DNA of 64,000 bases. Origin: Oopsacas minuta. Taxonomy: Eukaryota > Animalia > Porifera. The DNA lies in assembly GCA_024704765.1 (NCBI GenBank), contig JAKMXF010000362.1, positions 1 to 64,000 on the forward strand, written 5' to 3'. The notes below the pieces were generated by a model. The model saw only the letters and a program-made list of their open reading frames with translations. It did not search any database and had not been told where the DNA came from. This document shows, piece by piece, positions 3,015 through 63,571 of this stretch. Within the stretch, counting starts at the first letter, position 1. The number at the start of each line of letters is the position of its first letter. The translations under genes and the position numbers were made by a program.

Positions 3015-3022
3015 TATTTATA
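3015..3022 (-). promoter_or_regulatory. TATA box of bZIP copy A3
   Basis: Minus strand reads AGTATAAATAGGGAG, about 62 nt upstream of the ATG at 2953; same context as copy A2. Confidence 0.6.
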
Positions 3023-27543: not shown

Positions 27544-27653
27544 TTTAGAAAGAATAGATTCCTATGTGTTACAGACAAATTAATATTCATGCAAAACCAG
27601 GGTAACCAGAACTTCCTGCCCCATTGATGATATCTGAGTTGTTTTGACAGTAG

Positions 27654-29690: not shown

Positions 29691-30186
29691 TCATAGCATT
29701 TCATCAACTCCAAGGGAAACGTCAAACTTAGCGGCAACTTCCCACTGACTACTATTTTCACCTTCCCTCAATATCTCTAACTTCTGTAAAAAGGTTAGAT
29801 TCTTTGTGGATTTTGTTGAAGACATTGCGATGATTTGTTTTAGATAGACAGACCAAAGATTTGAACAAAATGTCTTCTTCATACAGACAGTGGTATATGT
29901 ATTCTTAACAAACAATGGGAAATGGCATCCATTTCATATAAACAATTGTCATTCCAATAATCAGCTTCTAAAGAACGAAACAAACATCGATCACACTGAT
30001 CCCCATAAACTGTGAACAAAATACATCCTACTGACTGTCATGTTGATCTCCACGAATTATGGTAAACACTTATGTTATTTAATGGGAGGTCCATAAGTGA
30101 TATTTGGGACACAAAAAAGTGTTCCCTGTTCACTATAGGGAGGTGTTTTTTAATCCGAGGTGTTCCCTAATGGAGGCTTTATTGTA
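29691..30186 (-). mobile_element. pogo/Tigger transposon remnant (CENP-B-type N-terminal HTH plus terminal repeat)
   Basis: KNLTFLQKLEILREGENSSQWEVAAKFDVS resembles the pogo/CENP-B N-terminal HTH. The minus-strand end TACAATAAAGCCTCCATTAGGGAACACC resembles Tigger-type TIRs. Confidence 0.55.
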
Positions 30187-30293
30187 TATAAAAGATACAT
30201 GCTATCACTCTAGTGCTGATAAATATACAAATCTATTTGTATGCAAACTAGGAATAAACATGCACAAACATACACTAATTGTCCAATTACAAA

Positions 30294-33656: not shown

Positions 33657-34577
33657 ATGATTCAGCCCTCACTTCACAACTTCATACAGAAAGAGTCCCC
33701 TGAGGTTAGCTCCAGCCGGATGGGGTCTATGGAAGGAGAGGTATTGGCGCCTAAAGGTGTAGCAGTTGATAAGTATACAGATAACATATATGTAGCTGAT
33801 GAGGGGAATAACAGAATACAGATGTTTGACAGGTTAGGAGATTACCAGTTCTCATTCGCTAGGTACAGCTCACGTAGTATGCCCTACGGTATTAAGGTGT
33901 TAGAAGGATTAGTATTTGTAACACAGTACAGTGGTAGGACTGTGTGTATCTACACGACAGAGGGTGATTTTGTGAGCAATACAGTATATAGCTCTCTCTT
34001 CTGGCCTACTGGAGTGGAGGTAGAGATTACTCCTGAGGGAGATTTGTGTCTGTATGTTTGCTCATCCGCCACCAGTTGTATATTTGTACTCAGTAACAAT
34101 GGAAACAGAGTTATGGAGGGAACTACTAGAGGACAGTTTATACAACCAAAAGATGTGAAGGTATTACAAGATAAATTGTTTATATTAGATCTACGTGACC
34201 CGTGTCTCCACGTGTTCTCTCTAGAGGGTGTTTATCAGAGAAGTATGATCAGTAATGGTATAAGTAGAGATGTAGCAGGTCCTCTGTTTTTCTGTGTAGA
34301 TGAGTCTGGGTTTCTTATTATAGGAGACAATCAGTCTAGTAGTGTTAAGGCATTCTCACTAGACGGAACACTCCTGCATGAGGTAGGTGTACATAGTCGA
34401 GATAGTGGGAGGTTTGTGAGGAGTTCCTCCCTCATGAGTCATCTCGTACACTTTGGTATGAGCTCTAGAGTGTCAAGAGAGGGACTAGTGAAAACTCCGA
34501 GAGGAGTAGCACTAGACTCTAAGCAGAGATTGGTAGTTATAGGACTGATGAAGCAGGGATGTTTGCAGATATTCTGA
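33657..34577 (+). CDS. Stand-alone NHL-repeat beta-propeller protein, 306 aa
   Basis: PKGVAVD..NIYVADEGNNRIQMFD, PYGIKV, PTGVEV, PKDVKV, PLFFCVD..IIGD and PRGVALD repeats. Confidence 0.88.
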   Translation: MIQPSLHNFIQKESPEVSSSRMGSMEGEVLAPKGVAVDKYTDNIYVADEGNNRIQMFDRLGDYQFSFARYSSRSMPYGIKVLEGLVFVTQYSGRTVCIYTTEGDFVSNTVYSSLFWPTGVEVEITPEGDLCLYVCSSATSCIFVLSNNGNRVMEGTTRGQFIQPKDVKVLQDKLFILDLRDPCLHVFSLEGVYQRSMISNGISRDVAGPLFFCVDESGFLIIGDNQSSSVKAFSLDGTLLHEVGVHSRDSGRFVRSSSLMSHLVHFGMSSRVSREGLVKTPRGVALDSKQRLVVIGLMKQGCLQIF

Positions 34578-35915
34578 GGACTTCCAATTATTTGGACATT
34601 CTTTATATAATTTGTATACATTTTTAACACTATGGTCATATCCTTAGTATACTTTCCGAGAGAATATTTTACGAAGTTCTGCTATGTAAATTGTACGTAA
34701 CGTTTCTTTGTGTGAACTATCATAATGTATTGGGGCAGTTTCTCTCAGATCCCCTTTCTTTAGCTAATTCTAATTATCTATAACACTACTGCTAAAGTAT
34801 TATTTTTGGAATATACTTGTAATACATTATCTGGCCATCAATTCGATATATGTCATCAACTCATTGAAATATATAAATTGTATCTGATTGATCAGAACAA
34901 ACTAAATTGTCCTGAACAGGTGTACTCAATTTTGGAGTCTGCTGATTTCATTTATTGTAATCACGTGTTATACTTCTTGGGTACTGTCAAATTAGCTCCA
35001 CCTTCCTCATCAAGTTTTCTGCCGCTCATAAATATTGCCATTAATTCACCATATACAGAATTCAACTACAGAATATATTTACTAACTCAAGTGATTTAAA
35101 TCCTAATGTACTAATAATGTAATAACACTAGTGGGTAACGCTTATAAGAATATCAATGCATTTTTGCCATTACTAATTTCTAACTCAGGATTTTAGTTTG
35201 ATCGAGTACTTCGTATGCTCGTTAGCTATGCTCAATCTAACGTGCAATTAACAACATTGCTTAAGCCAGGAAATATTACAGAATATACACACCCACGTAA
35301 CTATAACCTGTTCACTGACCATATTTTCCTGTACCATGGATATACTGTAAGTTTATTAAATTTGCTTGGCAATTTTAAATATTCTCGATAATATCGAATT
35401 GAATTTTGGCTTGAATAAATGTATTATTTTTGATAGATAATAATCAACACATCATCCAACAAGTCCCAGTTCTTAAGACTTCATCTGTTTGGTTAAAAGC
35501 GCAATATGTTGTTAATAATCTCCTCATTAAGATCGGAGAAACGATCACTAGTGCGTCTTTGATTTCAGAATTACTTATCAAGTGATCTGAGGATGTTTAT
35601 ACAAAATATACAATTTTTGTTATCATAAAGTTGTCACGTTATTGTTTTATACTATATACCATGGATGGCACATTTTGGGCCAATATCCACTTATAACTCG
35701 ATTGTCGCTGAAGTTGTAGTTAAATCAGTCCTGATAATATGTATTACATACCTAACCGCGCCCACATGCTCATATGGGCATCATTTGAAGCTGAAACAAG
35801 TCTCTCATTAACAGGGGCTTATTTATTTATTCTATATCTGTTATTCCGAAGTCTTGTTATTTCCCTCGAGAGTTCTAATTAACGGATTGTGAACATGAAA
35901 ATATTCAGCTATTAG

Positions 35916-38900
35916 ATGAGCTCAGATAAACACAAGCCTACAGACCACCACTGTCTGAGTATGCACTGGGCATACGGACTCAACACTCAGGTACCAGCAC
36001 ATAACATGACCCTATCAGATTCGAGGACTAGTGTGCTATACTCATGTTCTAACACAGCTGTATGGTATGATTGTCTTGCTGAGAGGGAGGTACTATTACA
36101 AGGACACCGTAATGAGATTACCTGTGTAGCTGTCAGTGCTGATAAGAAGTGGGTAGTAACAGCTGATGCTCAGGAGACAGTGTCTAGTTGTTCTGTTATT
36201 GTATGGGATATGAGAGTGATGGACAGGGAGAAGGGACCGGAAGCTACCCCTGTACAGGTGTTAATTAATTAATTTACTACAAGTATGGCCTTTATTATCA
36301 GGGCCAAGGCAGCGCTTAATGTGGCCCTGATAATATCGATAATAGTTACATGCTTTTTATATCTAAATATTAGTAACTACTCTATGTTAATATGGTAAGG
36401 TTGAAACCACTCGAACGAAATACACATCAGTATTCATGATAGTAGCCTTACCGAATACTAATACATACAGTAATTAACTCAACCATATGCTGATTACTGA
36501 ATTATTAGGTTGCAACCTTTGGTACATATATCTATATTATTCAATCTCAAGGATTGTTTGTTTGTCCGTTGTCAAGGAAAGGATTTGTGGTATGCACTTT
36601 TCTATTTCCGCATAACTATGTATTTATCGTGTTTATAAAAGAAGTAAATAGAATTCAATAAAACTTCACTAAATATATCGAACATGATGAATCCGATTTC
36701 ACACTTTTGGATTAATCATATGTAAATTTATTGTTGTTTTTTGAATATAAAGTAAACAAATTTCAAAATTGAGACAGAATCATAATTTCAACGACTATCC
36801 TGGGGTAATCGAGTATGCTGAGTCTGAATATTGTAAACAACATCAATATTATTAGATCTCAATTGTTGTTTGTCTGTTTGTTTGTGCGTTGAATACCTCG
36901 AGGCGTAATGCGCCAAGTTCATCACGAAGCGACGAGCCAAAGGCTCGTTACAATAAATATGTAAATTTAACCGTTAGAGCTTTAACAGCATATTCATTAA
37001 CTAGGACAGTTATAATATAATTTCTCTGTTCTGAAGTGGCCCGAGTAACCAAATTCAAGTTCAAATTTAACTTATTTAAGTAGCTTCCTGTCTTTTATAG
37101 ATTCTCTATAAGCCCTTATACGGAGGTTGCACCTCAATAGACCTCAACTCAGACTCCAAGTTCCTAGCTACTCTCAGCTGTGCAGGACAGCAGGGAGAGG
37201 AGATAGGTTCTCAGGTCCTGTCTATCTGGGAGTGGAGTGTATCAGATCCCTCTCCTCTACACGAGGTCATACTCAATGACATATCAGCTGGCGGACAGCT
37301 GATGCAGGTATCAGTAGATTCATGTTGTAATGTTAAGGGATGCTCAGGACTATGTAATACTGTAGATAGGGTTTTCGCTTATTAGTCTTTCATTATGCGC
37401 CTTCTTCAAGGCCAGTAAACCATAACCTGATTATATCCTGATCCCTGTACAGAGCAGTCACACCAACCTAGGCCACGGACAAATTCTGTGCACCCTTTGG
37501 GATGGCACTATCGAGATTTAGAGGTTATTCTCTATATTATATTCATAAATCAATCTTCCCTATTATATAGGTGTTATTCAACAAGTCAGACAACTCTCAG
37601 CTGCTCTGTACCGGCAGGAGTGAGGTAGCGTTTGTAGAGTGGAATAAACTGTCTTATAAATCCTCAGTACAGACTGCATCAGGACAGGATTTCAATAGAG
37701 CAATTGGAGAGTTTACTCTCTCTCAGTTCGTCCCTGACTCTCCCAATGTCCTCACACTGACGTCAGAGGGGAACATTCTCGTGTGGACCTCTCCCTCTCA
37801 GGTAGGAGTCCAACTGAAGAGAGTATTGAAGCTGTACCAACACTCAGAGGGTGTAGCTCTCACATGTATACAATCTCTATACAGTTATCTAGTGCTGGGT
37901 AATGCTAGAGGGGAGGTTAGCTTTCTAGACAGAGACCTGAAGCTAACTCAGTGGAAAGAGAAGGTAGCAGCTGGTCCTATAAACTCCATTTCATTCGCTA
38001 TGTCTGTCTCTGAGAGGAAACTACAGAAACATCAACTACCTAGGGAGACTACTATTCAGCAGAGCAAATTCTCTGTGCCTAACTTCATGGCTGGTTTGTA
38101 CATGTAATGTTATATACTATATTAGTTTATAGAAGGATGCTCATTATCATTTGATTTCTAGAATTTACTCTAATACGCTTAAATTCTATTGTAGAATGCT
38201 TAGCAGAACAGTAGACTGTAAGTCACGAGTAAACTTAACGGAACTTGGGTTGCCCAGTTTAGTACTAAGTTGTACCGACAGTTAATACGACACCGCATAA
38301 TTGTGACAATTCAGTTCCTCCCTATCAAGTGTATATCCTTATTATCCGAAAATCTTAGCATTATCTATATGCATATCAAGGTTTGGCAACGATATAGTGG
38401 TTATGAAAAAATATCGAAATTTTCAATATTTTGATTTCCGATATTTTTCTATTTTTAGAAATATCGAACCGATATCATCACATTGGGAATTTTCGGATAT
38501 ATAGAATCGTATCGGAGATTATGAACCAATATCGATATTTACCAGAACTTGTGCATATATATGCGCTGTATCTGAATCTTCCATGAATAGTTCCTGTTAA
38601 CTAACACACTATTTACTACAGGTACCATGGATTCCGAACTTGTACATGTGACAGGAGACGGACACAGTATTGACAAATTGAAGGAAGAACACAGCTCCTT
38701 TCTGTGTGCTCTATCTGCCCATCCCTCTCAAGATTTGGTAGCGATGGGTGGTTATAGCGGTAAGCTTAAAGTATGGGACTACACCAGACATAAAGTACTA
38801 GCTACTCGTCAGTTCCCATCTGATTGTCTGGTGTTCTGTCTGACATATGACAGCTCAGGAGGAGGACTAGCAGTAGGAATGTTAGATGGTACTCTGTACG

Positions 38901-45288: not shown

Positions 45289-45965
45289 TAATACCGATTA
45301 CTTTGATTTGAGATGTCTGTATTTATCCACTTCATCTATTATATCTATACTGTAAAACGCGATTAATCTTACAATCGAACCTCCGAGCTACGGGCAGTGT
45401 CATCGTAAGTTATCCAGAGATTAGAATTATCCTAATCTCAGAAATGACACTAACTCTATGACTACCATATTCTAAACGCAAATTCGATATGCATTTATTA
45501 TGTAAATAAGATTTTATCCAGGCGTCTATTAATGTGTTTGACATTAAAAACAGAAAATCCCAATTATGTAGACATTACTAGAAAATGTGCAAAACAATGA
45601 ACGGATTCAATATTTTTGCCCGAATTTTGGGAAGTGCTCAGATCTCAGAGGTTCTGCTTAATACGTGTATATATACGCAAGGGCGTTAACTTGGAATCGA
45701 TCCATGGAATATACATACATACATATAAATTATTTTTGTGTTTGTGTGGCGACTATATCCCTTTCTTTTAGCGATAAAGAACATTAAAACAAATTTAGCT
45801 GTTTCACACTTAATACGAAATCCGTGGCACAAAGTTCCGAGCTGTTGACAGTAGCTAGCGAAGAGAAAATATAATAAATGTAGACTATAGACAATTATGA
45901 TACAAGATAACTACATATAACACAAAGTAGAGTAAATTCTGGTAATATGTTACTCCATCAAACTT

Positions 45966-47531
45966 TCATTTGTACTTCTTTTCTCTCGATCTATCTTGAT
46001 GTGAGTATACCAGTACTAATACTCCTATCACTATGAAGTAAGCAGACAATTGAAAGAGAACAAAAACACGTATTATATTGAATAATAATCTGTGTAATCC
46101 GGTTAAGAAGTAGAGTAGTACTACGAATAGGAAACTAAACAACCCCAATAAGAAAAAGGGAAGAGCCCAGAGTCTGCTCTGCTTAATTTGATTTAAAACA
46201 GAAATTGCATTGAAAATTCTGTTAAAAAGCGCAATCCCAAATAGATACAAAGAATACGAAATGCCGAGAGCTAAAAACAAACTGTTATCAACAGCAAAAT
46301 CCAAATACTGAAAACAATGAAATACTGTGTCCTCAGGGAGAATAGAAACAGTATTATTCTTCAGAAATGTTACAACTAAAGTACTGTTAGCTCCATCCGG
46401 ACATATTATATGTTCAAAATAGAACGCTTCAATAGCTACGAAACAATCAAAGTCTTGGATACAAGTAGAAGAAATCTGTTCTGAGATCACAGTCAGATTA
46501 ATGAACTGGGAGAATGAAAACATTACAGCTATACATATCACTAACCATAAAGCCCACGTACTGCAATTGGATTCTATCCAAGGGTGTTTGGTGTTATTCA
46601 CCAGATTGTACTTGAATCTACCTCCCACAAGCCAATACACACTACCATCTGAGTGCTCGATCAGATGTGCAGAACCTAGTAGTGGAGTGATAGCAGAACG
46701 GAGAGACAGCTCCTGTCCTGTGAAGTATGACAGAACAACCTTAGCTATAGTTACGCTGCAGAGGAGCAGGAAGGGAACTAGGATGCCACATATGAAGTCA
46801 ACTAATACAAATGTCCAGCCAAATTTTAAAGGAATTGCTCTATCGTATTGGGCTATAACTATTGCCCAAGCAAATGAAATTATTCCCAGTAGTACTAGAA
46901 GAATGGACACGTACATAGCAACACAGGAGAGAATGGTTAGAGGAGCGAAACGTTTGCTAACGAACGGTTTGTAAGATACATCAATGTTAGGATTGTTCTT
47001 GACAGTAACTCTACACGTTTTAAGTTTAGTAGCTTCTCCAGATAGTTTAAGTACTGGAGCGTTTTCCAATTGTAGGTCAGATAAAAAGGGCGTGTCGTGT
47101 AAGATAAAGTTAGCATGACACCCTTGAAGTGGATTAGTTGCACCAATTGAAACTGCTGCAATATCCTCGCAACCCTCTCTAACAGTATCCTCGCTACCCT
47201 CTCTAACAGTATCCTCTGGGATTAAGTCTATACTCAGATACTTATGAGAATTTAGATCCTTCAATTCGACCACCTCCTCTGTTCCTTTCTTAGGAGCTTC
47301 CACCAACCTTTCATGGATTACAAACACCATTCCTGTGAGAGTTAGGATAAACGCGAATATGAATGTGAATATAGTATCTCCGAGTATGTAGAAGTAGTAG
47401 TCCAGATTACCTGCTCTAGCTCTGTCATAGGAGAGCACTATTAGAGCCAGGTACCCAGCCAACAGTACTAAGTCCAAAAGAAGCATAGTTAGCAGAATGC
47501 TGAAGGTGATCCATGAGTTCTTTACGTTCAT
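45966..47531 (-). CDS. Orphan multi-pass membrane protein, 521 aa (palindrome left copy)
   Basis: 1566-nt ORF with about 8 hydrophobic helices and a Cys- and N-sequon-bearing loop; translation identical to 59036-60601. Confidence 0.8.
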   Translation of the reverse strand: MNVKNSWITFSILLTMLLLDLVLLAGYLALIVLSYDRARAGNLDYYFYILGDTIFTFIFAFILTLTGMVFVIHERLVEAPKKGTEEVVELKDLNSHKYLSIDLIPEDTVREGSEDTVREGCEDIAAVSIGATNPLQGCHANFILHDTPFLSDLQLENAPVLKLSGEATKLKTCRVTVKNNPNIDVSYKPFVSKRFAPLTILSCVAMYVSILLVLLGIISFAWAIVIAQYDRAIPLKFGWTFVLVDFICGILVPFLLLCSVTIAKVVLSYFTGQELSLRSAITPLLGSAHLIEHSDGSVYWLVGGRFKYNLVNNTKHPWIESNCSTWALWLVICIAVMFSFSQFINLTVISEQISSTCIQDFDCFVAIEAFYFEHIICPDGANSTLVVTFLKNNTVSILPEDTVFHCFQYLDFAVDNSLFLALGISYSLYLFGIALFNRIFNAISVLNQIKQSRLWALPFFLLGLFSFLFVVLLYFLTGLHRLLFNIIRVFVLFQLSAYFIVIGVLVLVYSHQDRSREKKYK

Positions 47532-48385
47532 GCTAAAGTATAAAGTAAATATTACTCACAATATCGACTATCAAGGTAGAACCAGTGTGTTTCCCATTGG
47601 ATTGTTGTGGAGCGCTCATATGTGGGATTGAGTGCAGTCTCGATCGCATATACAAATATTCAGCCCAATGGGTACTCCATATTTAACGCAGCTAGAAATT
47701 CTATACGCTTAAATTCATTGATTAATGAATATTCGAAAAATTCATAATTCTTCTTATCTGAAATATTCGAAAATTTTTCCTGATAGTTCTAAATGTCTTG
47801 TTGATAGAACGTAAATAGGTAATAATATCCCTAAAAATATTCAACAGCTACCGTATTTACCATTCTTTTCGTTGCCATATTCGTATCAATTTTTTACAAT
47901 TTTTGGAAATACGAATGATTTTGGGAAACTATTCTACCAATTTGTTGCATAGCCAATAGAGACCTAAATTTCATCAAAATCTTCAGAGAGTGGTGATAAA
48001 TTGTATTCACAAACCTTGGAACCTTTTTTCTGGTTATACGTACAAGAAATTATAATTACTATACTAAATTACTAATGTGTGATAATTTTCTGTTTACCGT
48101 TAACAGCATACACGCTAGCACTAATTAGTTGTTTCCATCCTTGATATTGATAATTATAATTGGTATTAAATGTGAAGGGCATACATGTTGCTGGAATCAT
48201 ATTGGATGTATTATTTCATTTGTTATAATACACACCCTATATGTAGGGATAGTTTTTAATCATTTGCATCAACAGACCATGGATGGCTAAATTATGCCAT
48301 TTTCAACATTTTATATTAATCCATCATGAGTAACGGTTATTTTTATAGTTTTTCTTTACAGTTGTTTGTAAAGTTTTTATAAACT

Positions 48386-48479
48386 GCCGTAGAATTGCCA
48401 TAGAATTGCCATAGAATTGCCATAGAATTGCCGTAGAATTGCCATAGAATTGCCATAGAATTGCCATAGAATTGCCGTT
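48386..48479. repeat. 11-bp minisatellite (TAGAATTGCCA), 8 units
   Basis: 8 units here versus 4 units in the mirror arm (58132-58183). Confidence 0.9.
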
Positions 48480-50209
48480 GAAATATTAGTCAATACAATA
48501 TACTGCTGTAGAACCTTTAGTCTTTTTCTAGAATAAAACTACGTATATTATCCCTATTAATATTCAAAGACGAAATAGATGATTGTATTATTTAACTAAC
48601 AACTATATCATTTGACTCTGTTTTGCCATAAGTTAGCGCCTGGCTTTTTTCATAGAAACTATAGATTCAAAATTATCTACAATGTCTAATATCAATTGTA
48701 AGAATCATAAAAAGTATAAATTACTTTGCACAGCTTTTGGTTTACAACTAAGATTAAAGTTTCAGCTCTCATTTGTATTCTCTTTCGAGAGGGTTCTTGC
48801 GGAATGGAATTCAGGGTGCTTACCAGTAGTCAAGAATGTAACGATATTATTATTCTCGTTGTAATCCATTTTATTATGGAGATTGTTGAAAAATAAGTTG
48901 AAAAACACTTGAAACATTCCCATTTTATACGTTTGATAGCTAACATATATATTCTCCTATACGACAAAATGTGATAAGAAATCACTAAACATTCGAGACA
49001 TTAAAAAGTACTGTGAATGCACATGCATGAGGTCAGTAACGTAACGGACACCTGTGGGGCCTGGAGTCCAAGATAAAGCTGGGAGCCGAGTATAAGATTT
49101 CAACTTGTTTTATATATATTTCCACGATTATTCTATGCTGTTTCCAAATATTCTCCATTCCCTCAGAACCTAGAATTCAAGATTATTTCTCCCTAAATTA
49201 GACACAGATATCCAAGAATTCGGAAGAAAAATCGAAGTGTACATAGAAAACAACAAACCTCCCCCAAATGTGAAATATCGCACAATCACGAGTTAGTTTA
49301 AAGTTGTATTTATTCTAATTCTAGTAAATTAGAATATAAAGGAAATTTGATCCCAGTCAATACTGCATGACTAGCAAAATGGATATAACGCCTATATACA
49401 GTGTGAAGCTATCTATGTGTTCTATTTATATCGGATGTTATATATATTTATTACAAACAAATATCATCTATGGAGTTTTTAGCTTAGAAACATCCTTTAT
49501 TATTGCAGAGAAAGAATGTTGTAGATTGCTACACATAACCAGGAATTGAATTCGCCAATATAATTGAGTCCTGATTGATGTCCAAAACTGTTAATTGACA
49601 GCTATATTCATGAATGATAATTTTCTGTTTACTGTTTACTGTTAACCACATCAGCAAGTAGCACTAACTGTTTCCATCCTTCATATTGATAATTTGCAGT
49701 GTGCAGTCATGTATATTGAAATCAAATGAAAAGAGCAAAACCCATAACAAACATGTCTTATCCGACTTATCTGAGTAATTATTAACCGAGTTCTACTGTA
49801 TGATACTTCAGATCTATGTAGATATACAATATGTGAACCTTTTAGGTATGCTTGCTTACCAAACTCTGCTATGGTTCCAAAATGGCTGTCAATTCAGATA
49901 ATATACATAAGATCCTTCGTAGCACTCCTCCCATGGGTCCGCCACTCTGACCTCAACTTCTGCGATAATTGCTAGCTTATATATACTTTCTATGCTACTT
50001 TACTACAAATATGCGAATTATCCAATATTCAAATGTAACAACTTATTATTTGTTTGAGAGTAGATTATGCAATAATAATTTATGCAACTTAGCTAAAATT
50101 ATAATATTTATCGCTAGCTAATAGCACTGCAGTAGGTTGTGACATTACAACCTCCACATGTGTGGATTAATTAATATTACATAATGCAGGGGGAATGCTT
50201 GGCAATAAC

Positions 50210-50590
50210 TCATGAGGTAATTTGATACAGTGCATTGGAGTAACAACAAATTTGAACTTTCAAATCCTTCTTTTCACTTATCAACTTATTCTTTTCTGAG
50301 ACTAGTCGTTTGATTTCATTTTCCAATTTAATAGGTTCGTATTTACGTCTCTCAACCGAATACTTTCCATTCCACTCTAATCTCAGATTTTTCAGCTCTG
50401 CTGTATCCCTCACATTCAGGTTTTCTGATATTACTTCTAGCAACTCTTTCTTCAAGCTACATAGCTCTTTAGTATCAATTATTTGGTTTAGCTTTTTGCC
50501 TGATCTCACATCTGCTCTCCAGTTTAGTTTCAATATTATCTCGATTTTCTCAAAATATGATTCCTTATCCTCTGATTCGATCTTATTCAT
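50210..50590 (-). CDS. Degenerate Maf-like bZIP microprotein family B, 126 aa (left arm)
   Basis: ATG at 50590 with TATAAATA at 50619-50626. Paralogous to 54182-54559 (shared ESYF..I..IL..NWR...RSGK.L) and has a C-terminal heptad zipper. Confidence 0.75.
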   Translation of the reverse strand: MNKIESEDKESYFEKIEIILKLNWRADVRSGKKLNQIIDTKELCSLKKELLEVISENLNVRDTAELKNLRLEWNGKYSVERRKYEPIKLENEIKRLVSEKNKLISEKKDLKVQICCYSNALYQITS

Positions 50591-51386
50591 TCTATTTTTA
50601 TTAATTATTATTTGTGTGTATTTATAGTTTATTTTCTGATTTACTTGGTTCATCTCCCTCATCGTGCAGCAATGTATTTCTATACAGGGATTTATCTAAG
50701 TTTATTGTATTCAAACAAACATGCTTAATTCCTCTATCAATCAATTTAATTAGATAATACTTCAGAATCTTATTTGTAAATGTATACTCTAACTTATATA
50801 TTCTCGTAAACCTCTTACCTTCTAAATACTGGAATATACAATTATCATACAATTTGTAGTTTCAGTATTCTAATATTAGACAAACTTATTCGGTACATAA
50901 CTGTCTAAAAGCAGTCAACACTAAATTGATATTTTAATATTTTGTAAGATATTTATGATCATTTCTGGTTTTTGTTGGAAACACAAGAACTGTAATGATT
51001 ACATTGTAATCTTCACATTACAGAAATAATCTCTTTTTACCTACAGAAGTTAGTCTTGTAACTTATTAGTGCTTATGTAATAAGGGTAATACTAATTATC
51101 ACAAATTGACTAAGTAACGGATGATTTTTGCCAGCTAAAGGGAGTGGCTGCTACGAGCGAGTAGGAAATATTCCAAAGATTCTTGATGTGACCTATTCAA
51201 TACTCTAGTAGTTTGAAGAGTTTCTCAACCTGTGGTCATATGACCAAACTCTGTATATTTACGTCGTATTCGAGTCCAAATACTCTTCTATTGCCATTGT
51301 GACCAGATGTGGCCAAATTTGACCAATGTTGAACCACAATATCACTTGTGTGTGGTCTCTATACATCTTATAATAATATACATAAC

Positions 51387-51735
51387 ACGAGCCTTTGGGC
51401 TCGTCGCTTCGCGATTACTCGGCACATTACGCCTCGAGGTATCCATTAAGCTACAAATTGACGACCCCTATGGGTATTATAATATAGCTATATTTAGAAC
51501 AATGTAATTCAAAATATACTTATATGGCATATATTATTGAATTATTTTGTAAGATCAATCCCCTTTGTAACCGTTTAGAGGAAGTATCTACGTAAATTTT
51601 GAGATTTTGCTAATTTGTTTACTATATATTCATAAAAACAATAACAAATTTAGATATGATTAATCTCAAAGTGTGAAAATCAGATTCTGCATATTCGATA
51701 TATTTAGTGAAGTTTTATTGAATTCTATTTACTAA
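51387..51735 (-). mobile_element. Helitron-like repeat, 3' portion
   Basis: Begins with the perfect ACGAGCC-TTTG-GGCTCGT hairpin followed by CGCTTCGC; matches 5952-6230. Confidence 0.6.
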
Positions 51736-51847
51736 ACTAGAATATGAAGTATGTTTTGTGTCTGATAATATTCTGCTGTAAAATTTTATGAGCTTTTTGG
51801 TTTTGTGAGTTGCGCTCGAGATCTACATTATTTTGCAATTGCTGTAT

Positions 51848-52126
51848 CAAGGATTGTTACCGATACATTGGGTTGGAAAAAATATCGAAAAATATCAAAA
51901 TTCGCCGATATTTCTCGATATTTTACTCTAGTCTTAGAATTTAAACTTAGCTAGTGTATTACTCGACTCTAGAAATTGGCGAGATTGCCAATGAAATATA
52001 AGATAATTTCGAAAGAATATCCAATGTTTCCAATACAATATCCGATATTTATTGATATCGAACAATTTCACGATTATCGTATCAATATCGGAGATTTTTC
52101 CCGACATCGATATTTGTACAACCTTG
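51848..52126. mobile_element. P-superfamily-like MITE with 7-bp TSD
   Basis: CAAGG...CCTTG termini and perfect direct repeat GCTGTAT (51841-51847 and 52127-52133); same family as 38377-38551. Confidence 0.7.
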
Positions 52127-54181
52127 GCTGTATTTAGGTAAGTCAGAGTAAATAAAATCACAAGCATTATATCATAAAATTAGAAAACTACATATGTAAC
52201 AATCGGATTCACCATACTGTCCTTCCAGTGAAACCCTTGAGAGTTAATCATATTATTATACACAAAAATACAGCGAATAAATATAAAGTAAATGTTTTCG
52301 CAAGTTAGTGAGCTATGCTAGTTTCATTATTATAATATTCAGAGGGATTAGTTAATTAGATGATAATTATATAAGATTATAGAATCACTAGAACTCAATT
52401 TGTATGATCAATTATTTCTTTTCGTTAATTAATCGTATTTTTCAGTAATCAGTCATCTTTCTATTTAAATTTAGAGAACTGTGAATGATCAATGTGAAGG
52501 AATAAGACCCAAAATATTTCTGAGCTGCTATCCAAATAGTGTACTGAAATGCTCATATTCTCTGCTAGGGCCAATATAGTCAGATAATCCAAGGATATGT
52601 CCATTCAATAATTTCCTTAGTGAGTTATAAAAACTCTCAGCAACACGTAGGGATGTCAAGGAAAGTTCTGGCCAACTTAGGGTCTTATTCCGTATCCCCA
52701 TTTTGTATGAATTCTTTTGATTACATTACTATGCTTGTAATTCTATACTCTAATAGCAAGTGTATGTGAAAGTCCAACAAGATGTACTGAATCAAAACTG
52801 CAGTTTCATTGTGAGCAGAAGCATTACACTAAACAATAATCTATAGTGTGAATTAGGAGAGCAAATCACCCAGCCAATTACATTGTACTAAAATAGTTGC
52901 TAAGGCAAAATTAGTAAAATAGTTAATTGTAAAATCGAACAAACGTTTTCCCTGCTGTATCCTTGTTATTTGATCCCCTTCCGCCAATGGATAAAAGGTT
53001 GACTACACTAATGGTTAGGACCATATAGGGGCGCCGTCAGGGCGGCGCGAGGGGCCGCATTCGCTCCAACTTGAGCAAGTGCTGCGCCAGGAATCCGCCA
53101 CCTGGTCAATAGTGGTGTATTGGTATTTGAAAAGTGGGGAAATGGTGTATCCCTCTGAATGTTCAATAAACAATTCAAATTATACTATCGTCTATCGAAT
53201 TCCAATCAGAGACAGGCTTCAATCCCCTGGTTGTTAGGCATATCAGTATTAATTTTGTTCCAATTACAGTACTGTGGAAATTTAAAAGCAAGAGGCCTTA
53301 GTCAAAAAGAAAACAAAATATATTTTTGTTTATGGAAGAACAAAAGGTGGGGAAAACACGTTCCCCCCAATACATGACTGCTAGCGACCCGAACTGAACG
53401 AAAATTTTGTGTTTAGGACTCTGGAGCGCCTCTGGCATGTGGTAAACAAAATTTTGAATACAATTCAAGGCTGGTTGATTCAATCATGAATTCGGTTAAT
53501 AAGTACTCGGCTTAAGACTTGCTTGTGTACGTTTAACTTAACATAAATGTAGAGATTATCTTATGCAATGAAAGATTCTGAAAGATCAAAGGGCCATGCT
53601 ACCAAATGTGATCCTATGGCGCGAATGCTCCGCCTACCAATAGACCTGGCGGCACCCCCCGGGACCCTGTATTCTCTACACAATTTTGGACGGTTTCCAT
53701 TAGTATTATCTGACTCAATTTGAGTGTAAACATTGTAAACTGCGAATTGATATTTCTAACTAACATATCTTACTAGGAACTCAATAAGGGATTTCTGTAA
53801 TCAAACAATCTGACTTTGTATATATAATTATAATTAGGAAGATTACAATCAGCTAACATTATTTATACAGTGTGAATTTACAAATATACAAATTATATCA
53901 TTTTCATAAAGAATTAAGTATTTAATATATATTCTATTCAGAAGGTGGAGTACGAAGATTTGGAAGTATATTTCAACAGTTACGACAGCGGGATTTAACT
54001 ATGAAATATAGAACTAAACGGTTAGATAATATATATATTATTCAGAAATATATTTGTAATACTCAGATACCTATTTCGATATTTTTAGATTTTTCTTTAA
54101 TTCGCCGATGATATAAAATGGTCGTTTACAATATAAGAGGCATTTTGATTCCTTGGGATGCAATAAGTTCAAGTTCAAGAT

Positions 54182-54559
54182 ATGAACAGTATTGCAGAGC
54201 AGGAATCATATTTCAAAGAAATCCAAAGTATTTTGATGCCAAATTGGAGAGAACAAATTAGATCTGGGAAAACACTCCTAGAGATTGTGGATATTTGTAG
54301 GTTGGATGAAGTGAATATCAGAGAATTGAACTTTATGCTAAAGAACTTAACAAATCTTGACGTAGCTCAGTTGAAATCTCTAAGAATGAAGATAAAAGAT
54401 CGACAATACAGAACTAGAGTTAGTTACAACAATGGAGATAAGCTATTACAAGAAATTCAAGATTTAGAAGCTGAGAAGGAGGCACTATTGACAAAAAGAA
54501 AAGAGATGATGAAAGAAATAAACTTTTATTTACAAGTTATTCAACTTGATACCATATAA
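54182..54559 (+). CDS. Degenerate Maf-like bZIP microprotein family B, 125 aa (palindrome spacer)
   Basis: LDEVNIRELNFMLKNLTNLDVAQLKSLRMKIKDRQY aligns with Maf [36 protein letters not shown]; followed by a zipper. Confidence 0.8.
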   Translation: MNSIAEQESYFKEIQSILMPNWREQIRSGKTLLEIVDICRLDEVNIRELNFMLKNLTNLDVAQLKSLRMKIKDRQYRTRVSYNNGDKLLQEIQDLEAEKEALLTKRKEMMKEINFYLQVIQLDTI

Positions 54560-56022
54560 TCATTACACATATACACATGCATACACATCTAGACATTAGC
54601 GAAGTTTTGCTGCACAGTTCTAATATACTTATACTGTTAATACTTCAAGTATAATTCTTAAATATTAGTTAATACTGGAACTGGAGAAATTACATTATTG
54701 CAATAAAATACCTGCCGCATATATGAGACCAGATTATTAATGACATTTGAAAAATTTCTATTAAGCATTTTTGGTGATTAATCATATTTTCACACATTTT
54801 TGGTGATTAATCATATTTTCACACATTTTTGGTTGATTAATCATATTTTCAAATTATGCTAGAGATTTCGTTTGAACTGCTAGTCAGGGGTAATCGAGTT
54901 TGTAGAATCCACATTTGGCTATTTCAAATCTCGCACTCACTGATCAATCGCATGATTAGTAACATTCTCACACCTTTTGCACACATTTCAAATTGATACA
55001 AGAGATCTCATTTCAATAGGTAGACTCAGGGTAATTATTTAGAATTTATTCGTAGGAAGATGTTCAGTGGCGAATAATATTGAATATCCTGAAATATTTC
55101 TCAGATCCAGACAGGAGCCCAAAATCAGTTGGGATCTGGTGCATTGCGGTATCTACACTGGGGGTCATGGGGTACGTGCCCCCCTTGAAATAAACAAACA
55201 CATATCCCTGAGCTGCACTTCCAGTCTGTCGGCTGGATATATTTATTATAATCTGGCAGTAGATTTATAGGTATTACTACACTATGAGTGATTTACAATT
55301 TTACAAATACAGTACGTACTCGACAAAAGAGAAATAAGTTCCTTCTTGTATATTTGTGAATAGTAACTTTCGTTGTTATGCCTCCATTACTAAACCACCA
55401 GTACTATATAGCAGGACTAGATCACTAGTAGTAGAGGCTGTGCAATGCTAAAATTATCTTGCTAATTAATACTAAATAGATCACAAGATTTACTAGAGTA
55501 AGTAAGAGATAGAATTGCAGTATAACCAATGAAGCAAATAATCACTATTATTCTTGCATTTTACAATCATTAATCAATCCATCTATTATTGATAATGAGA
55601 TTACTATAACAAAATAATACAATAATGATAAATTTCATATATAAATATTTTACAAAATATTAAAATATCAATTTAGTGTTGACTGCTTTTAGACAGTTAT
55701 GTACCGAATAAGTTTGTCTAATATTAGAATACTGAAACTACAAATTGTATGATAATTGCATATTCCAGTATTTATAAGGTAAGAGGTTTACGAGAATATA
55801 TAAGTTAGAGTATACATTTACAAATAAGATTCTGAAGTATTATCTAATTAAATTGATTGATAGAGGAATTAAGCATGTTTGTTTGAATACAATAAACTTA
55901 GATAAATCCCTGTATAGAAATACATTGCTGCACGATGAGGGAGATGAACCAAGTAAATCAGAAAATAAACTATAAATACACACAAATAATAATTAATAAA
56001 AATAGAAACAAATACAAATAGA

Positions 56023-56403
56023 ATGAATAAGATCGAATCAGAGGATAAGGAATCATATTTTGAGAAAATCGAGATAATATTGAAACTAAACTGGAGAGCA
56101 GATATGAGATCAGGCAAAAAGCTAAACCAAATAATTGATACTAAAGAGCTATGTGGCTTGAAGAAAGAGTTGCTAGAAGTAATATCAGAAAACCTGAATG
56201 TGAGGGATACAGCAGAGCTGAAAAATCTGAGATTAGAGTGGAATGGAAAGTATTCGGTTGAGAGACGTAAATACGAACCTATTAAATTGGAAAATGAAAT
56301 CAAACGACTAGTCTCAGAAAAGAATAAGTTGATAAGCGAAAAGAAGGATTTGAAAGTTCAAATTTGTTGTTACTCCAATGCACTGTATCAAATTACCTCA
56401 TGA
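56023..56403 (+). CDS. Degenerate Maf-like bZIP microprotein family B, 126 aa (right arm)
   Basis: Differs from the left copy by V/M and S/G substitutions; TATAAATA at 55971-55978. Confidence 0.75.
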   Translation: MNKIESEDKESYFEKIEIILKLNWRADMRSGKKLNQIIDTKELCGLKKELLEVISENLNVRDTAELKNLRLEWNGKYSVERRKYEPIKLENEIKRLVSEKNKLISEKKDLKVQICCYSNALYQITS

Positions 56404-59035
56404 GTTATTGCCAAGCATTCCCCCTGCATTATGTAATATTAATTAATCCACACATGTGGAGGTTGTAATGTCACAACCTACTGCAGTGCTATTAGCTAGC
56501 GATAAATATTATAATTTTAGCTAAGTTGCATAAATTATTATTGCATAATCTACTCTCAAACAAATAATAAGTTGTTACATTTGAATATTGGATAATTCGC
56601 ATATTTGTAGTAAAGTAGCATAGAAAGTATATATAAGCTAGCAATTATCGCAGAAGTTGAGGTCAGAGTGGCGGACCCATGGAAGGAGTGCCACGAAGGA
56701 TCTTATGTATATTATCTGAATTGACAGCCATTTTGGAACCATAGCAGAGTTTGGTAAGCAAGCATACCTAAAAGGTTCACATATCGTATATCGACATGGA
56801 TCTGAAGTATCATACAGTAGAACTCGGTTAATAATTACTCAGATAAGTCGGATAAGACATGTTTGTTATGGGTTTTGCTCTTTTCATTTGATTTCAATAT
56901 ACATGACTGCACACTGCAAATTATCAATATGAAGGATGGAAACAGTTAGTGCTACTTGCTGATGTGGTTAACAGTAAACAGTAAACAGAAATTATCATTC
57001 ATGAATATAGCTGTCAATTAACAGTTTTGGACATCAATCAGGACTCAATTATATTGGCGAATTCAATTCCTGGTTATGTGTAGCAATCTACAACATTCTT
57101 TCTCTGCAATAATAAAGGGTGTTTCTAAGCTATAAATTCCATAGATGATATTTTGTTTGTAATAAATATATATAACATCTGATATAAATAGAACACATAG
57201 ATAGCTTCACACTGTATATAGGCGTTATATCCATTTTGCTAGTCATGCAGTATTGACTGGGATCAAATTTCTTTTATATTCTAATTTACTAGAATTAGAA
57301 TACAACTTTAAACTAACTCGTGATTGTGCGATATTTCACATTTGGGGGAGGTTTGTTGTTTTCTATGTACATTTCGATTTTTCTTCCGAATTCTTGGATA
57401 TCTGTGTCTAATTTATGGAGAAATAATCTTGAATTCTAGGTTCTGAGGTAATGGAAAATTATTTGGAAAGGGCATAGAATAATCGTGGAAATATACATTA
57501 AAACAAGTTGAGATCTTATACTCGGCTCCCAGCATTATCTTGGACTCCAGGCCCCACAGGCGTCCGTTACGCTACTGACCTCATGCATGTGCATTCACAG
57601 TACTTTTTAATGTCTCGAATGTTTAGTGATTTCTTATTACATTTTGTCGTATAGGAGAGTAAATATGTTAGCTATCAAACGTATAAAATGGGAATGTTTC
57701 AAGTGTTTTTCAACTTATTTTTCAACAATCTCCATAATAAAATGGATTACAACGAGAATAATAATATCGTTACATTCTTGACTACTGGTAAGCACCCTGA
57801 ATTCCATTCCGCAAGAACCCTCTCGAAAGAGAATACAAATGAGAGCTGAAACTTTAATCTTAGTTGTAAACCAAAAGCTGTGCAAAGTAATTTATACTTT
57901 TTATGATTCTTACAATTGATATTAGACATTGTAGATAATTTTGAATCTATAGTTTCTATGAAAAAAGCCAGGCGCTAACTTATGGCAAAACAGAGTCAAA
58001 TGATATAGTTGTTAGTTAAATAATACAATCATCTATTTCGTCTTTGAATATTAATAGGGATAATATACGTAGTTTTATTCTAGAAAAAGACTAAAGGTTC
58101 TACAGCAGTATATTGTATTGACTAATATTTCAACGGCAATTCTATGGCAATTCTATGGCAATTCTATGGCAATTCTACGGCAGTTTATAAAAACTTTACA
58201 AACAACTGTAAAGAAAAACTATAAAAATAACCGTTACTCATGATGGATTAATATAAAATGTTGAAAATGGCATAATTTAGCCATCCATGGTCTGTTGATG
58301 CAAATGATTAAAAACTATCCCTACATATAGGGTGTGTATTATAACAAATGAAATAATACATCCAATATGATTCCAGCAACATGTATGCCCTTCACATTTA
58401 ATACCAATTATAATTATCAATATCAAGGATGGAAACAACTAATTAGTGCTAGCGTGTATGCTGTTAACGGTAAACAGAAAATTATCACACATTAGTAATT
58501 TAGTATAGTAATTATAATTTCTTGTACGTATAACCAGAAAAAAGGTTCCAAGGTTTGTGAATACAATTTATCACCACTCTCTGAAGATTTTGATGAAATT
58601 TAGGTCTCTATTGGCTATGCAACAAATTGGTAGAATAGTTTCCCAAAATCATTCGTATTTCCAAAAATTGTAAAAAATTGATACGAATATGGCAACGAAA
58701 AGAATGGTAAATACGGTAGCTGTTGAATATTTTTAGGGATATTATTACCTATTTACGTTCTATCAACAAGACATTTAGAACTATCAGGAAAAATTTTCGA
58801 ATATTTCAGATAAGAAGAATTATGAATTTTTCGAATATTCATTAATCAATGAATTTAAGCGTATAGAATTTCTAGCTGCGTTAAATATGGAGTACCCATT
58901 GGGCTGAATATTTGTATATGCGATCGAGACTGCACTCAATCCCACATATGAGCGCTCCACAACAATCCAATGGGAAACACACTGGTTCTACCTTGATAGT
59001 CGATATTGTGAGTAATATTTACTTTATACTTTAGC

Positions 59036-60601
59036 ATGAACGTAAAGAACTCATGGATCACCTTCAGCATTCTGCTAACTATGCTTCTTTTGGACTTAGT
59101 ACTGTTGGCTGGGTACCTGGCTCTAATAGTGCTCTCCTATGACAGAGCTAGAGCAGGTAATCTGGACTACTACTTCTACATACTCGGAGATACTATATTC
59201 ACATTCATATTCGCGTTTATCCTAACTCTCACAGGAATGGTGTTTGTAATCCATGAAAGGTTGGTGGAAGCTCCTAAGAAAGGAACAGAGGAGGTGGTCG
59301 AATTGAAGGATCTAAATTCTCATAAGTATCTGAGTATAGACTTAATCCCAGAGGATACTGTTAGAGAGGGTAGCGAGGATACTGTTAGAGAGGGTTGCGA
59401 GGATATTGCAGCAGTTTCAATTGGTGCAACTAATCCACTTCAAGGGTGTCATGCTAACTTTATCTTACACGACACGCCCTTTTTATCTGACCTACAATTG
59501 GAAAACGCTCCAGTACTTAAACTATCTGGAGAAGCTACTAAACTTAAAACGTGTAGAGTTACTGTCAAGAACAATCCTAACATTGATGTATCTTACAAAC
59601 CGTTCGTTAGCAAACGTTTCGCTCCTCTAACCATTCTCTCCTGTGTTGCTATGTACGTGTCCATTCTTCTAGTACTACTGGGAATAATTTCATTTGCTTG
59701 GGCAATAGTTATAGCCCAATACGATAGAGCAATTCCTTTAAAATTTGGCTGGACATTTGTATTAGTTGACTTCATATGTGGCATCCTAGTTCCCTTCCTG
59801 CTCCTCTGCAGCGTAACTATAGCTAAGGTTGTTCTGTCATACTTCACAGGACAGGAGCTGTCTCTCCGTTCTGCTATCACTCCACTACTAGGTTCTGCAC
59901 ATCTGATCGAGCACTCAGATGGTAGTGTGTATTGGCTTGTGGGAGGTAGATTCAAGTACAATCTGGTGAATAACACCAAACACCCTTGGATAGAATCCAA
60001 TTGCAGTACGTGGGCTTTATGGTTAGTGATATGTATAGCTGTAATGTTTTCATTCTCCCAGTTCATTAATCTGACTGTGATCTCAGAACAGATTTCTTCT
60101 ACTTGTATCCAAGACTTTGATTGTTTCGTAGCTATTGAAGCGTTCTATTTTGAACATATAATATGTCCGGATGGAGCTAACAGTACTTTAGTTGTAACAT
60201 TTCTGAAGAATAATACTGTTTCTATTCTCCCTGAGGACACAGTATTTCATTGTTTTCAGTATTTGGATTTTGCTGTTGATAACAGTTTGTTTTTAGCTCT
60301 CGGCATTTCGTATTCTTTGTATCTATTTGGGATTGCGCTTTTTAACAGAATTTTCAATGCAATTTCTGTTTTAAATCAAATTAAGCAGAGCAGACTCTGG
60401 GCTCTTCCCTTTTTCTTATTGGGGTTGTTTAGTTTCCTATTCGTAGTACTACTCTACTTCTTAACCGGATTACACAGATTATTATTCAATATAATACGTG
60501 TTTTTGTTCTCTTTCAATTGTCTGCTTACTTCATAGTGATAGGAGTATTAGTACTGGTATACTCACATCAAGATAGATCGAGAGAAAAGAAGTACAAATG
60601 A
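59036..60601 (+). CDS. Orphan multi-pass membrane protein, 521 aa (palindrome right copy)
   Basis: Translation identical to 45966-47531. Confidence 0.8.
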   Translation: MNVKNSWITFSILLTMLLLDLVLLAGYLALIVLSYDRARAGNLDYYFYILGDTIFTFIFAFILTLTGMVFVIHERLVEAPKKGTEEVVELKDLNSHKYLSIDLIPEDTVREGSEDTVREGCEDIAAVSIGATNPLQGCHANFILHDTPFLSDLQLENAPVLKLSGEATKLKTCRVTVKNNPNIDVSYKPFVSKRFAPLTILSCVAMYVSILLVLLGIISFAWAIVIAQYDRAIPLKFGWTFVLVDFICGILVPFLLLCSVTIAKVVLSYFTGQELSLRSAITPLLGSAHLIEHSDGSVYWLVGGRFKYNLVNNTKHPWIESNCSTWALWLVICIAVMFSFSQFINLTVISEQISSTCIQDFDCFVAIEAFYFEHIICPDGANSTLVVTFLKNNTVSILPEDTVFHCFQYLDFAVDNSLFLALGISYSLYLFGIALFNRIFNAISVLNQIKQSRLWALPFFLLGLFSFLFVVLLYFLTGLHRLLFNIIRVFVLFQLSAYFIVIGVLVLVYSHQDRSREKKYK

Positions 60602-60950
60602 AAGTTTGATGGAGTAACATATTACCAGAATTTACTCTACTTTGTGTTATATGTAGTTATCTTGTATCATAATTGTCTATAGTCTACATTTATTATATTT
60701 TCTCTTCGCTAGCTACTGTCAACAGCTCGGAACTTTGTACCACGGATTTCGTATTAAGTGTGAAACAGCTAAATTTGTTTTAATGTTCTTTATCGCTAAA
60801 AGAAAGGGATATAGTCGCCACACAAACACAAAAATAATTTATATGTATGTATGTATATTCCATGAATCGATTCCAAGTTAACACCCTTGTCTAGACTTGG
60901 AGTCCAAGTTTACGCCTTAGACCACTTACGTCTGAGTAAGTGGTCTAGTG

Positions 60951-61647: not shown

Positions 61648-61738
61648 GACACTTGTAGGATCTTCATCTCACGATCAAATTTCGTTCTAGCTTCAAATTT
61701 GAATAATTATAAGCTAATTAAATGTAAAAAACAAGCAA

Positions 61739-62578
61739 CTAAAAGGAGTGTAAACAGTAATGTCCATTTCTAGCTATAAAGAATATAATTCTTAATTCTG
61801 ACATACAAATACCCCATGCATCTTCATACTTATCCATCATTATGGTTTGTGTTAGTTGTCCTGATGGAGAGATTATCTTCACAGCGTGATTGATACTATC
61901 AGTAAGTAGGATATTTCCTAATGGATCCAGACAGAAGAACCATGTATCAAAAACGATACCATGTTTCCCAGTAGAAACACACGAGTTTATCAAGTCTCCA
62001 CATCTCGAATAGAAGTGGATACAATTCGTACTTCGGTCTAATACTATAATACAATCAGGAGTAACCTTTACATCTCCAGTATAAAATAGCTCACCAGCAC
62101 CGAAGCATTTCAGGAATTGGAGGGACTCTGAAAATATGCAGACTCTATTATTGAGACAATCAGCTACATACACATCACCGTTATAATCTACACAGACTCC
62201 ATGTGGATTGGCTAGCTTTCCCTCTTCTTTTACTCTCAATAGCTTGTAATCGCTGAACCGATACAAATTGCTGGGAATTATGTCAGTAACGTAGATATAA
62301 TATTTTGTTACTGCTATACCCCATGGATCACTAAGTATTCCTTGTCCAAAGTTAGTTATGAATATTCCCTCAAAATTTATCACCTGAATACGTCTGTTTC
62401 CCCTATCAACTACATAAATGAACTCATTGAGTTCATCTATAGATATACCTCTAGCATCATATATTTCATTGATAGCTTTACCATGCTTACCGAAATGTAA
62501 CATAGACTGCTCTTTGAGAGCGTATTTTAGTTCACATACTTTCATATTTGCACATTTACGAGGAACTCCTCCTTCCAT
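61739..62578 (-). CDS. NHL-repeat beta-propeller protein, 279 aa
   Basis: ARGISID..FIYVVDRGNRRIQV, PWGIAV, PHGVCVDYNGDVYVADCLNNRVCIF and WFFCLDPLGNILLTD repeats. Confidence 0.88.
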   Translation of the reverse strand: MEGGVPRKCANMKVCELKYALKEQSMLHFGKHGKAINEIYDARGISIDELNEFIYVVDRGNRRIQVINFEGIFITNFGQGILSDPWGIAVTKYYIYVTDIIPSNLYRFSDYKLLRVKEEGKLANPHGVCVDYNGDVYVADCLNNRVCIFSESLQFLKCFGAGELFYTGDVKVTPDCIIVLDRSTNCIHFYSRCGDLINSCVSTGKHGIVFDTWFFCLDPLGNILLTDSINHAVKIISPSGQLTQTIMMDKYEDAWGICMSELRIIFFIARNGHYCLHSF

Positions 62579-63571
62579 AAGCAGATTAGTTTCTTATTTG
62601 CACTGTTTAACCTGGTTGATAATACTTCGTCAATATGATATATTCTATTATATATTATTGTAACTTGACCTTGAGAATGCTAACGTACGCCTATGGTTGC
62701 TATCGTAAATAACTCTTGATACAGATATTTCATGCATTATTAAATCTATTTTTAGCCCAACGATTGCTCCCGTGTCTTTTCGAATGTTGAACATATACAA
62801 ATATAATTTAGAAAAATTAAAATTTATCGATTTCCCTGATTTCACAATATACGTATGAGTTCAAGAATCACAAAGAATAATATAGAACAAGCAACATGTT
62901 GAATGGTGGGATACATATCACGATCCCCTCCATCTTATAGTATTGATAGTAACCTATCCTAATGTCAAAATTCTGACTCTTATGCAATTCATCATGTGAG
63001 TATTACGTCATCACGAATATACTATACATAGATGGCAAACTGGCGTCCAAAGGATTAAAGGAACCCGCTCCATTTATGAGGGACTGCACTCATATTTAAT
63101 TGCAAACAAATTACAAATTTCATCGTTATTCTGCATAAAATTCAGTTTTCTCGCTATTTAAAGTGGATGCTGGGACACTCTTGTATAATTAACAATTTAA
63201 CGAATGGCTTGAGGTTGCACATTTAACTGAATTTACAATGGTTAAATTCAATCCTGATTACTTAAATACGAATCTAATGTATATCTGAAATAATGAAAAG
63301 AAGCGCGATTGGAGTGCGGTCCATTTTTCCTGGGAGCAGGAGCCGGGGTCCACTCCTTTTCTTGAGTTAGGGGTGTAGGTACGTGGGACTCGGAGCGAGA
63401 GCGCGCTCCAAAATTGAGGGCCGCTTTAAATGCTCTGCTGGCGTCTCACCAAGTCGTTTGGCAGTCACATTATTGTACTTTCGAAATAATGAGTTTGAAC
63501 GTGATTTAGAGTCTTGCAAGGAAACTTATTGGAAACACTCCAAAAGGTTGTCAAAATACTTATCTCGCATT

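Follow-up and report, generated by a model that had tools for sequence, protein, structure and literature searches.

A gene-bearing palindrome in the sponge Oopsacas minuta whose patchy arm divergence fits gene conversion

Palindromes that carry genes and are homogenised by conversion between their arms are known above all from the sex chromosomes of mammals and of a few plants, and an apparent 15.2-kb palindrome on a contig of the glass sponge Oopsacas minuta raises the question of whether such a structure is genuine in this genome, how its arms come to be so similar and whether the genes that they carry belong together. The palindrome lies in a window of 64,000 nucleotides, which is the whole stretch analysed here and corresponds to positions 1-64000 of the 138,148-bp contig JAKMXF010000362.1 (C362; NCBI GenBank assembly GCA_024704765.1); genome-wide searches covered the O. 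minuta assembly of 61.46 Mb in 365 contigs. Each arm carries a bZIP-B microprotein gene and a gene encoding a 521-amino-acid (aa) multipass membrane protein, which a first-pass annotation of the sequence had read as a regulator plus membrane-protein module forming an undescribed system. Our analyses indicate that the locus is likely to be a genuine inverted segmental duplication in O. minuta, whose arms would have been exchanging sequence by intrachromosomal gene conversion; the finding reveals no new functional system.

Structure of the palindrome

Using a repeat finder, BLAST and global alignment, we recovered the 15.2-kb palindrome that the first-pass annotation had described, with its two 5.3-kb arms and its 4.7-kb spacer. 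The older, diverged bZIP-B paralog that had been assigned to the spacer was also there. The features are the following:

45678-50956 (5,279 bp), left palindrome arm, genes on the minus strand, away from the spacer (repeat finder, BLAST, global alignment)
50957-55640 (4,684 bp), no strand, unique non-palindromic spacer (BLAST)
55641-60889 (5,249 bp), right palindrome arm, genes on the plus strand, away from the spacer (repeat finder, BLAST, global alignment)
45966-47531, minus strand, 521-aa multipass membrane gene, left copy; a single open reading frame (ORF) whose protein is identical to that of the right copy, this exact protein being in NCBI for the genome
59036-60601, plus strand, 521-aa multipass membrane gene, right copy; a single ORF
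50210-50590, minus strand, 126-aa bZIP-B microprotein gene of the left arm; NCBI has the protein in this 126-aa form
56023-56403, plus strand, 126-aa bZIP-B microprotein gene of the right arm; V28M, S45G and one synonymous change set it apart from the left copy
54182-54559, plus strand, bZIP-B paralog of 125 aa, older and located in the spacer; it shares 36% identity with the arm copies (E 1.3e-11)

The two arms were aligned end to end in a single BLAST alignment, with an identity of 98.1% when gaps were counted and of 99.4% at substitution sites. Their global alignment contained 33 substitutions (25 transitions and 8 transversions) and 7 indels, the larger of which were one of 44 bp, corresponding to the copy number of an 11-bp microsatellite, and one of 16 bp located just upstream of the bZIP-B start codon. 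Owing to this 16-bp indel, the left bZIP-B ORF can be extended upstream of the shared ATG to 50662. In each arm, the 126-aa bZIP-B ORF is followed on the same strand, about 2.7 kb downstream, by the 521-aa membrane ORF, and both arms read outward, as had been described. The left and right flanks of the palindrome displayed no homology to each other, the two ends of the spacer displayed none to one another, and the N count of the C362 contig was zero.

Divergence between the arms

The 33 substitutions were not evenly distributed along the arms, which could be divided into four zones (left-arm coordinates):

45678-45828, outermost zone, 3 substitutions in 151 columns (2.0%)
45829-48948, no substitution in 3,076 columns (0%)
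48949-49930, most divergent patch, overlapping an old dispersed repeat, 24 substitutions in 977 columns (2.46%)
49931-50956, zone that holds the bZIP-B gene, 6 substitutions in 1,026 columns (0.58%)

The substitution-free tract (45829-48948 in the left arm and 57663-60738 in the right arm, no strand, 3,076 aligned columns) covers the whole membrane gene together with 1.4 kb upstream and 137 bp downstream of it, and diverged arm sequence is found on both of its sides. The longest substitution-free run reached 2,117 columns at most in 200,000 permutations, against the 3,076 columns observed (P<5e-6), and the differences in rate between patches were individually significant (Fisher P from 1e-4 to 7e-4). 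Such clustered differences fit successive gene-conversion events between the arms, of different ages, on top of an older inverted duplication, conversion being read here from the patchiness itself. The substitution-free tract would then be the most recent conversion tract, and the duplication would date back to at least about 2.5% divergence. The first-pass annotation had put forward arm-to-arm conversion on general grounds, and its signature was borne out by this 3.1-kb tract without substitutions standing beside a patch with 2.5% divergence.

The overall divergence between the arms is small and the most divergent patch overlaps the old dispersed repeat (at about 49118-49614), two observations that would also suit a single very recent inverted duplication without any conversion, in which the uneven divergence would reflect local differences in mutation rate, for example in a hypermutable patch derived from the repeat. 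However, for 3,076 bp to be free of substitutions next to 977 bp with 2.46%, rates in non-coding DNA would have to differ by far more than tenfold, and the outermost 151 bp are also 2% diverged, so that the clean tract is flanked on both sides by diverged arm sequence. Besides, copies of the repeat elsewhere in the genome reach only 67-72% identity, making them poor conversion donors. We consider a history without conversion to be highly improbable.

Another explanation would be that the palindrome is an assembly artefact, with one 5.3-kb block (or two blocks arranged otherwise) traversed twice in opposite orientations, or with a perfect tract that comes from graph simplification or polishing. 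The way in which the assembly was made, by hybrid SPAdes with corrected PacBio reads and then SSPACE, Pilon and GapFiller (PMC10280926), gives some substance to this explanation, as does the fact that the protein collection holds no independent assembly of the locus. A related ENA contig even shows an obvious fold-back artefact: ERZ26869290:ctg358184 contains (at 23222-36385) a 5.6-kb, 99.3% identical fold-back with a centre of about 550 bp and differences that are mostly indels, which spans the membrane gene, GPKOW exon 1 and GPKOW and has one arm cut by the contig end. We considered this structure as a palindrome at the orthologous locus that might support the Oopsacas one, but discarded it, since it is probably a fold-back artefact located where the contig ends. 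While that fold-back is near-perfect, has a minimal centre and reaches the end of its contig, the Oopsacas palindrome has a 4.7-kb spacer and is located at 45.7-60.9 kb of a 138-kb contig without N. This spacer is asymmetric and has its own gene, the flanks are unique on both sides, and all four junctions would need to be wrong at once. Moreover, the 33 substitutions are patchily clustered, with a transition to transversion ratio of 25:8 that corresponds to a biological spectrum. The assembler also preserved isolated differences between the arms (at 50276, 50458 and 50509), making a blanket collapse of near-identical sequence unlikely. Finally, the palindrome is the sole inverted pair of at least 1 kb in the 268 kb of genome that were scanned (all of C362 and 130 kb of a second contig, C44), so that there is no pervasive assembly pattern. 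Judged on these features, the structure would be genuine, and an artefact looks unlikely.

A few points nevertheless weigh against a genuine duplication shaped by conversion. The assembly pipeline can mis-thread repeats or homogenise near-identical copies, and part of the perfect tract could be technical. The palindrome is read here from the assembled sequence, and both conversion and the age of the palindrome from the arms of one genome.

The two arm genes and the module question

With a genuine inverted duplication as the favoured reading, we turned to the genes that it contains. A genome search with the membrane gene identified three copies in total, which are the two arm copies and one at C44:543257-544801 that encodes a protein with 67% identity to the arm protein and that is letter for letter the NCBI protein KAI6659979.1 (LOD99_14320, Oopsacas minuta). 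DNA homology between the arm locus and the C44 locus comprises the coding sequence and only about 50-90 bp on either side. A word search also detected relatives of about 520 aa, 56-61% identical, in several ENA assemblies. In four of these assemblies, we found the same gene order, with GPKOW coming after the membrane gene, then a convergent Rad51-like gene and then a U1-type zinc-finger gene, with TRAPPC11 next in two of the four. A conserved small ORF located just downstream of the membrane gene orthologs is probably the first exon of GPKOW. On the basis of their similarity and common gene order, the ENA assemblies with orthologs would come from glass sponges. The neighbour of the C44 copy is a 329-aa ORF that reads by eye as a G-patch/KOW protein. 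C44 thus has the membrane gene, GPKOW and the Rad51-like gene in the order of the four assemblies, which makes its copy the positional ortholog and those of the palindrome the derived ones.

In a maximum-likelihood tree, the arm copy and the C44 copy were sisters (95/98 support), the arm branch being the longer one (0.40 versus 0.23). Between these two copies, synonymous divergence (dS) was 0.489 and the ratio of nonsynonymous to synonymous divergence (dN/dS) was 0.44, while dS exceeded 1.4 in comparisons with other species and dN/dS ranged from 0.07 to 0.2 among orthologs. The membrane gene would therefore have arrived at C362 long before the last sequence exchange of the arms. These values indicate that the arm gene evolves under relaxed or altered constraint, yet its 521-codon frame has been kept open. 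The arm gene also contains an in-frame 24-bp tandem duplication (47162-47216 / 59351-59405) that gives EDTVREGSEDTVREGCED and that is missing from the C44 copy and from all the orthologs compared.

A second inverted pair of the same gene was observed in ENA assembly ERZ25766962 (ctg17166, 2.48 Mb; 809884-843066), where two paralogs lie inverted and tail to tail, about 10 kb apart. They share 89% protein identity (dS 0.096, dN/dS 0.51), and the arms that contain them are 91-93% identical and extend upstream of the genes. Since these paralogs are each other's sisters in the tree (100/100), their duplication is independent of the Oopsacas one. The two cases also differ in their arrangement, the ERZ25766962 pair being convergent and the Oopsacas palindrome head to head, and no propensity can be claimed from two cases.

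We then looked at the family and fold of the membrane protein. Pfam contained no family for 10 close or for 63 wider family members, and a PDB sequence search with the membrane protein gave no match. An exhaustive profile search returned at least 66 representative clusters, mostly of 300-340-aa proteins matching residues ~200-510. A full-length AlphaFold model made from 10 sequences was unusable, with a predicted local distance difference test score (pLDDT) of 42; the well-modelled part is that of the C-terminal 332 residues (190-521), which reached a pLDDT of 91.7 and a predicted template modelling score (pTM) of 0.89 with a 63-sequence alignment. This C-terminal model consists of six long helices, helices 2 and 3 being separated by a small beta unit and helices 3 and 4 by a beta-rich loop, which carries three invariant cysteines as well as N-glycosylation motifs. 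Two further helices are found in the N-terminal part, which by eye looks like an incomplete repeat of the first portion of the C-terminal module. The protein is a glass-sponge-type multipass membrane protein with eight transmembrane helices (8-TM), with a predicted disulfide-bonded, glycosylated loop that probably faces the outside or the lumen. Comparisons of the model with known structures gave a best E of 0.12 with Foldseek against PDB and a best Z of 5.8 in a wide VIA-align scan, nothing being above the background expected for helical proteins.

TMEM117 (PF15113) was tried as a relative and rejected: this lead came from language-model features only (0.77-0.80, below the reliable range), and sequence tests are against it. 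PF15113 was not among the families matched by the 10 close members (all matches at an E of 5 or less) or among the 25 listed of 52 families that the 63 wider members matched at an E of at most 1, and a genome-wide six-frame search with PF15113 gave nothing. With a confident fold, no Pfam family, no match to a solved structure and a two to three times faster evolution after duplication, this unnamed membrane family merits a characterisation of its own.

As for bZIP-B, a genome search found three copies only, all inside the 15-kb palindrome, and a word-based protein search with the spacer copy returned only itself. The spacer protein matched the Pfam family bZIP_Maf (PF03131) with 20.2 bits (E 8.8e-4), which is below the 22-bit gathering cut-off, and the arm copies gave no Pfam match at an E of 1 or less. 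When a profile made of the three bZIP-B sequences was compared to PDB, the top matches were Nrf2, MafG and MafB (E 0.017-0.1), the profile (query 42-115) aligning over the extended-homology, basic and zipper regions of these three proteins. A four-heptad leucine zipper is also visible in the sequence, as in Maf/CNC bZIP proteins. Unlike these proteins, the arm copies are without most of the basic residues of the basic region, and scores are sub-threshold. A Maf/CNC origin of bZIP-B is therefore sub-threshold but plausible. With most basic residues gone from the arm copies, DNA binding is doubtful, and one may speculate that bZIP-B dimerises without binding DNA. The spacer copy is in tandem orientation with the right-arm copy and located 1.5 kb upstream of it, which weakly suggests that the right arm may be the original context and the left arm an inverted copy.

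In favour of a co-adapted regulator and membrane-protein module, kept duplicated as a palindrome by selection and representing the undescribed functional system proposed by the first-pass annotation, both genes are intact in both arms and have annotations in the deposited genome. The most recent identical tract takes in the membrane gene together with its upstream region, and the membrane ORF stayed open over a dS of 0.49 and is probably functional, which can also be counted in favour of a module. However, a functional pair should have left a trace of its linkage in other places, and the linkage is not conserved: the synteny check that the annotation had called for was run on the four other assemblies, where the orthologs have GPKOW and the Rad51-like gene as neighbours, and no bZIP-like ORF was detected by tblastn (E of 0.05 or less) near the C44 copy or at the orthologous loci examined. 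The confinement of bZIP-B to the C362 palindrome and the failure of its arm copies to match a Pfam bZIP family also argue against a module, and these copies already differ at 2 of 126 residues. Moreover, the two genes stand 2.7 kb apart, with two dispersed repeats and a microsatellite between them, and a dN/dS of 0.44-0.5 is as compatible with relaxed constraint as with adaptation. We give a selected module very little credit, since the adjacency of bZIP-B and the membrane gene suffices by itself for their joint duplication.

The history that we propose for this inverted segmental duplication starts with a dispersed copy of the 8-TM membrane gene, which would have landed beside degenerate Maf-like (bZIP-B) genes that formed a small local cluster. 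A 5.3-kb block with one bZIP-B gene and the membrane gene would later have been copied, inverted, to the opposite side of the older bZIP-B gene. From then on, conversion would have exchanged sequence between the arms in patches that differ in age, the newest one comprising the whole membrane gene and its upstream region. In such a scenario, the two genes would travel together as neighbours rather than as a demonstrated functional unit, and both arm copies would be expressed. We infer the order of these events, and conversion as the cause of the patchiness, from the pattern described above.

Known palindromes, inverted duplications and the neighbourhood of the locus

The arms of sex-chromosome palindromes are 8-10 kb long or more. 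In the abstracts of studies on the large gene-bearing palindromes of mammalian X and Y chromosomes and of willow sex chromosomes (PMC8327919, PMC8600007, PMC7023750), arms are longer than 10 kb, as given in two of them, and more than 99% identical, whereas the Oopsacas arms are 5.3 kb long and one of their patches is 97.5% identical, both values being lower. Both kinds have inverted arms around a unique spacer, with protein-coding genes duplicated in these arms and a near-99% identity patterned as by conversion. Unlike those palindromes, the Oopsacas one is not known to be tied to sex chromosomes or the germ line, nor are sex chromosomes known from sponges such as O. minuta.

Young inverted segmental duplications, as found in C. 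elegans and yeast, consist of a block of a few kb copied nearby in inverted orientation, with relaxed constraint and with conversion between close copies. Nothing essential distinguishes the Oopsacas locus from such an ordinary duplication, which is the category that fits it best. We also considered a transposable element with long terminal inverted repeats and rejected it: apart from short embedded repeats, the arm sequence occurred only twice in the genome, the outer junctions had no matching flanking bases that would point to a target-site duplication, and the spacer contained no transposase ORF.

It is conceivable, although we hold it to be rather doubtful, that conversion-maintained palindromes recur in this compact glass-sponge genome as holders of young lineage-specific gene pairs, here with a structurally unclassified membrane family that is also inverted-duplicated in a second sponge assembly. 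A clean, small palindrome of this kind on an ordinary sponge contig would show the repair-driven process of the sex-chromosome palindromes at work in one of the earliest-branching animal lineages, independently of sex-chromosome biology, and all the more so if it is one of several in the genome.

Several repeats are embedded in the palindrome:

47862-48028, no strand, dispersed repeat of ~170 bp between the two arm genes; more than 40 genome copies, 72-84% identical
48385-48476 (8.4 units, left arm) and 58135-58182 (4.4 units, right arm), no strand, 11-bp microsatellite, source of the 44-bp indel
51371-51733, no strand, abundant ~360-bp repeat in the spacer; 1,718 first-look candidates, 82-90% identical

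Rfam and tRNA scans revealed no RNA genes in the region, and a sigma-70 promoter scan, which is not applicable to a eukaryote, gave matches at the level of shuffled sequence.

A cluster of another small bZIP-type gene, bZIP-A (mini-Maf), is located at 1475-4769 and contains three copies in alternating orientation. Its inverted pairs are 1475-1804 with 2634-2963 (92%) and 2644-2936 with 4477-4769 (96%), and the third copy has a stop codon in the frame tried. A relationship between bZIP-B and bZIP-A was tested by profile comparison and rejected, the hhalign probability being 0.5%, with no detectable relationship. From this arrangement, inverted duplication seems habitual for these small genes.

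To the right of the palindrome, an NHL-repeat gene (61717-62596) has an inverted copy with 98.9% identity at C362:89565-90444, 27 kb away, the match of 881 bp having roughly the size of the gene, and a more distant NHL paralog is found at 33657-34577. Finally, two satellite blocks with a 17-bp period (22764-25154) surround an ORF (23521-24288) that reads, from its sequence, as a Tc1/mariner-like transposase.

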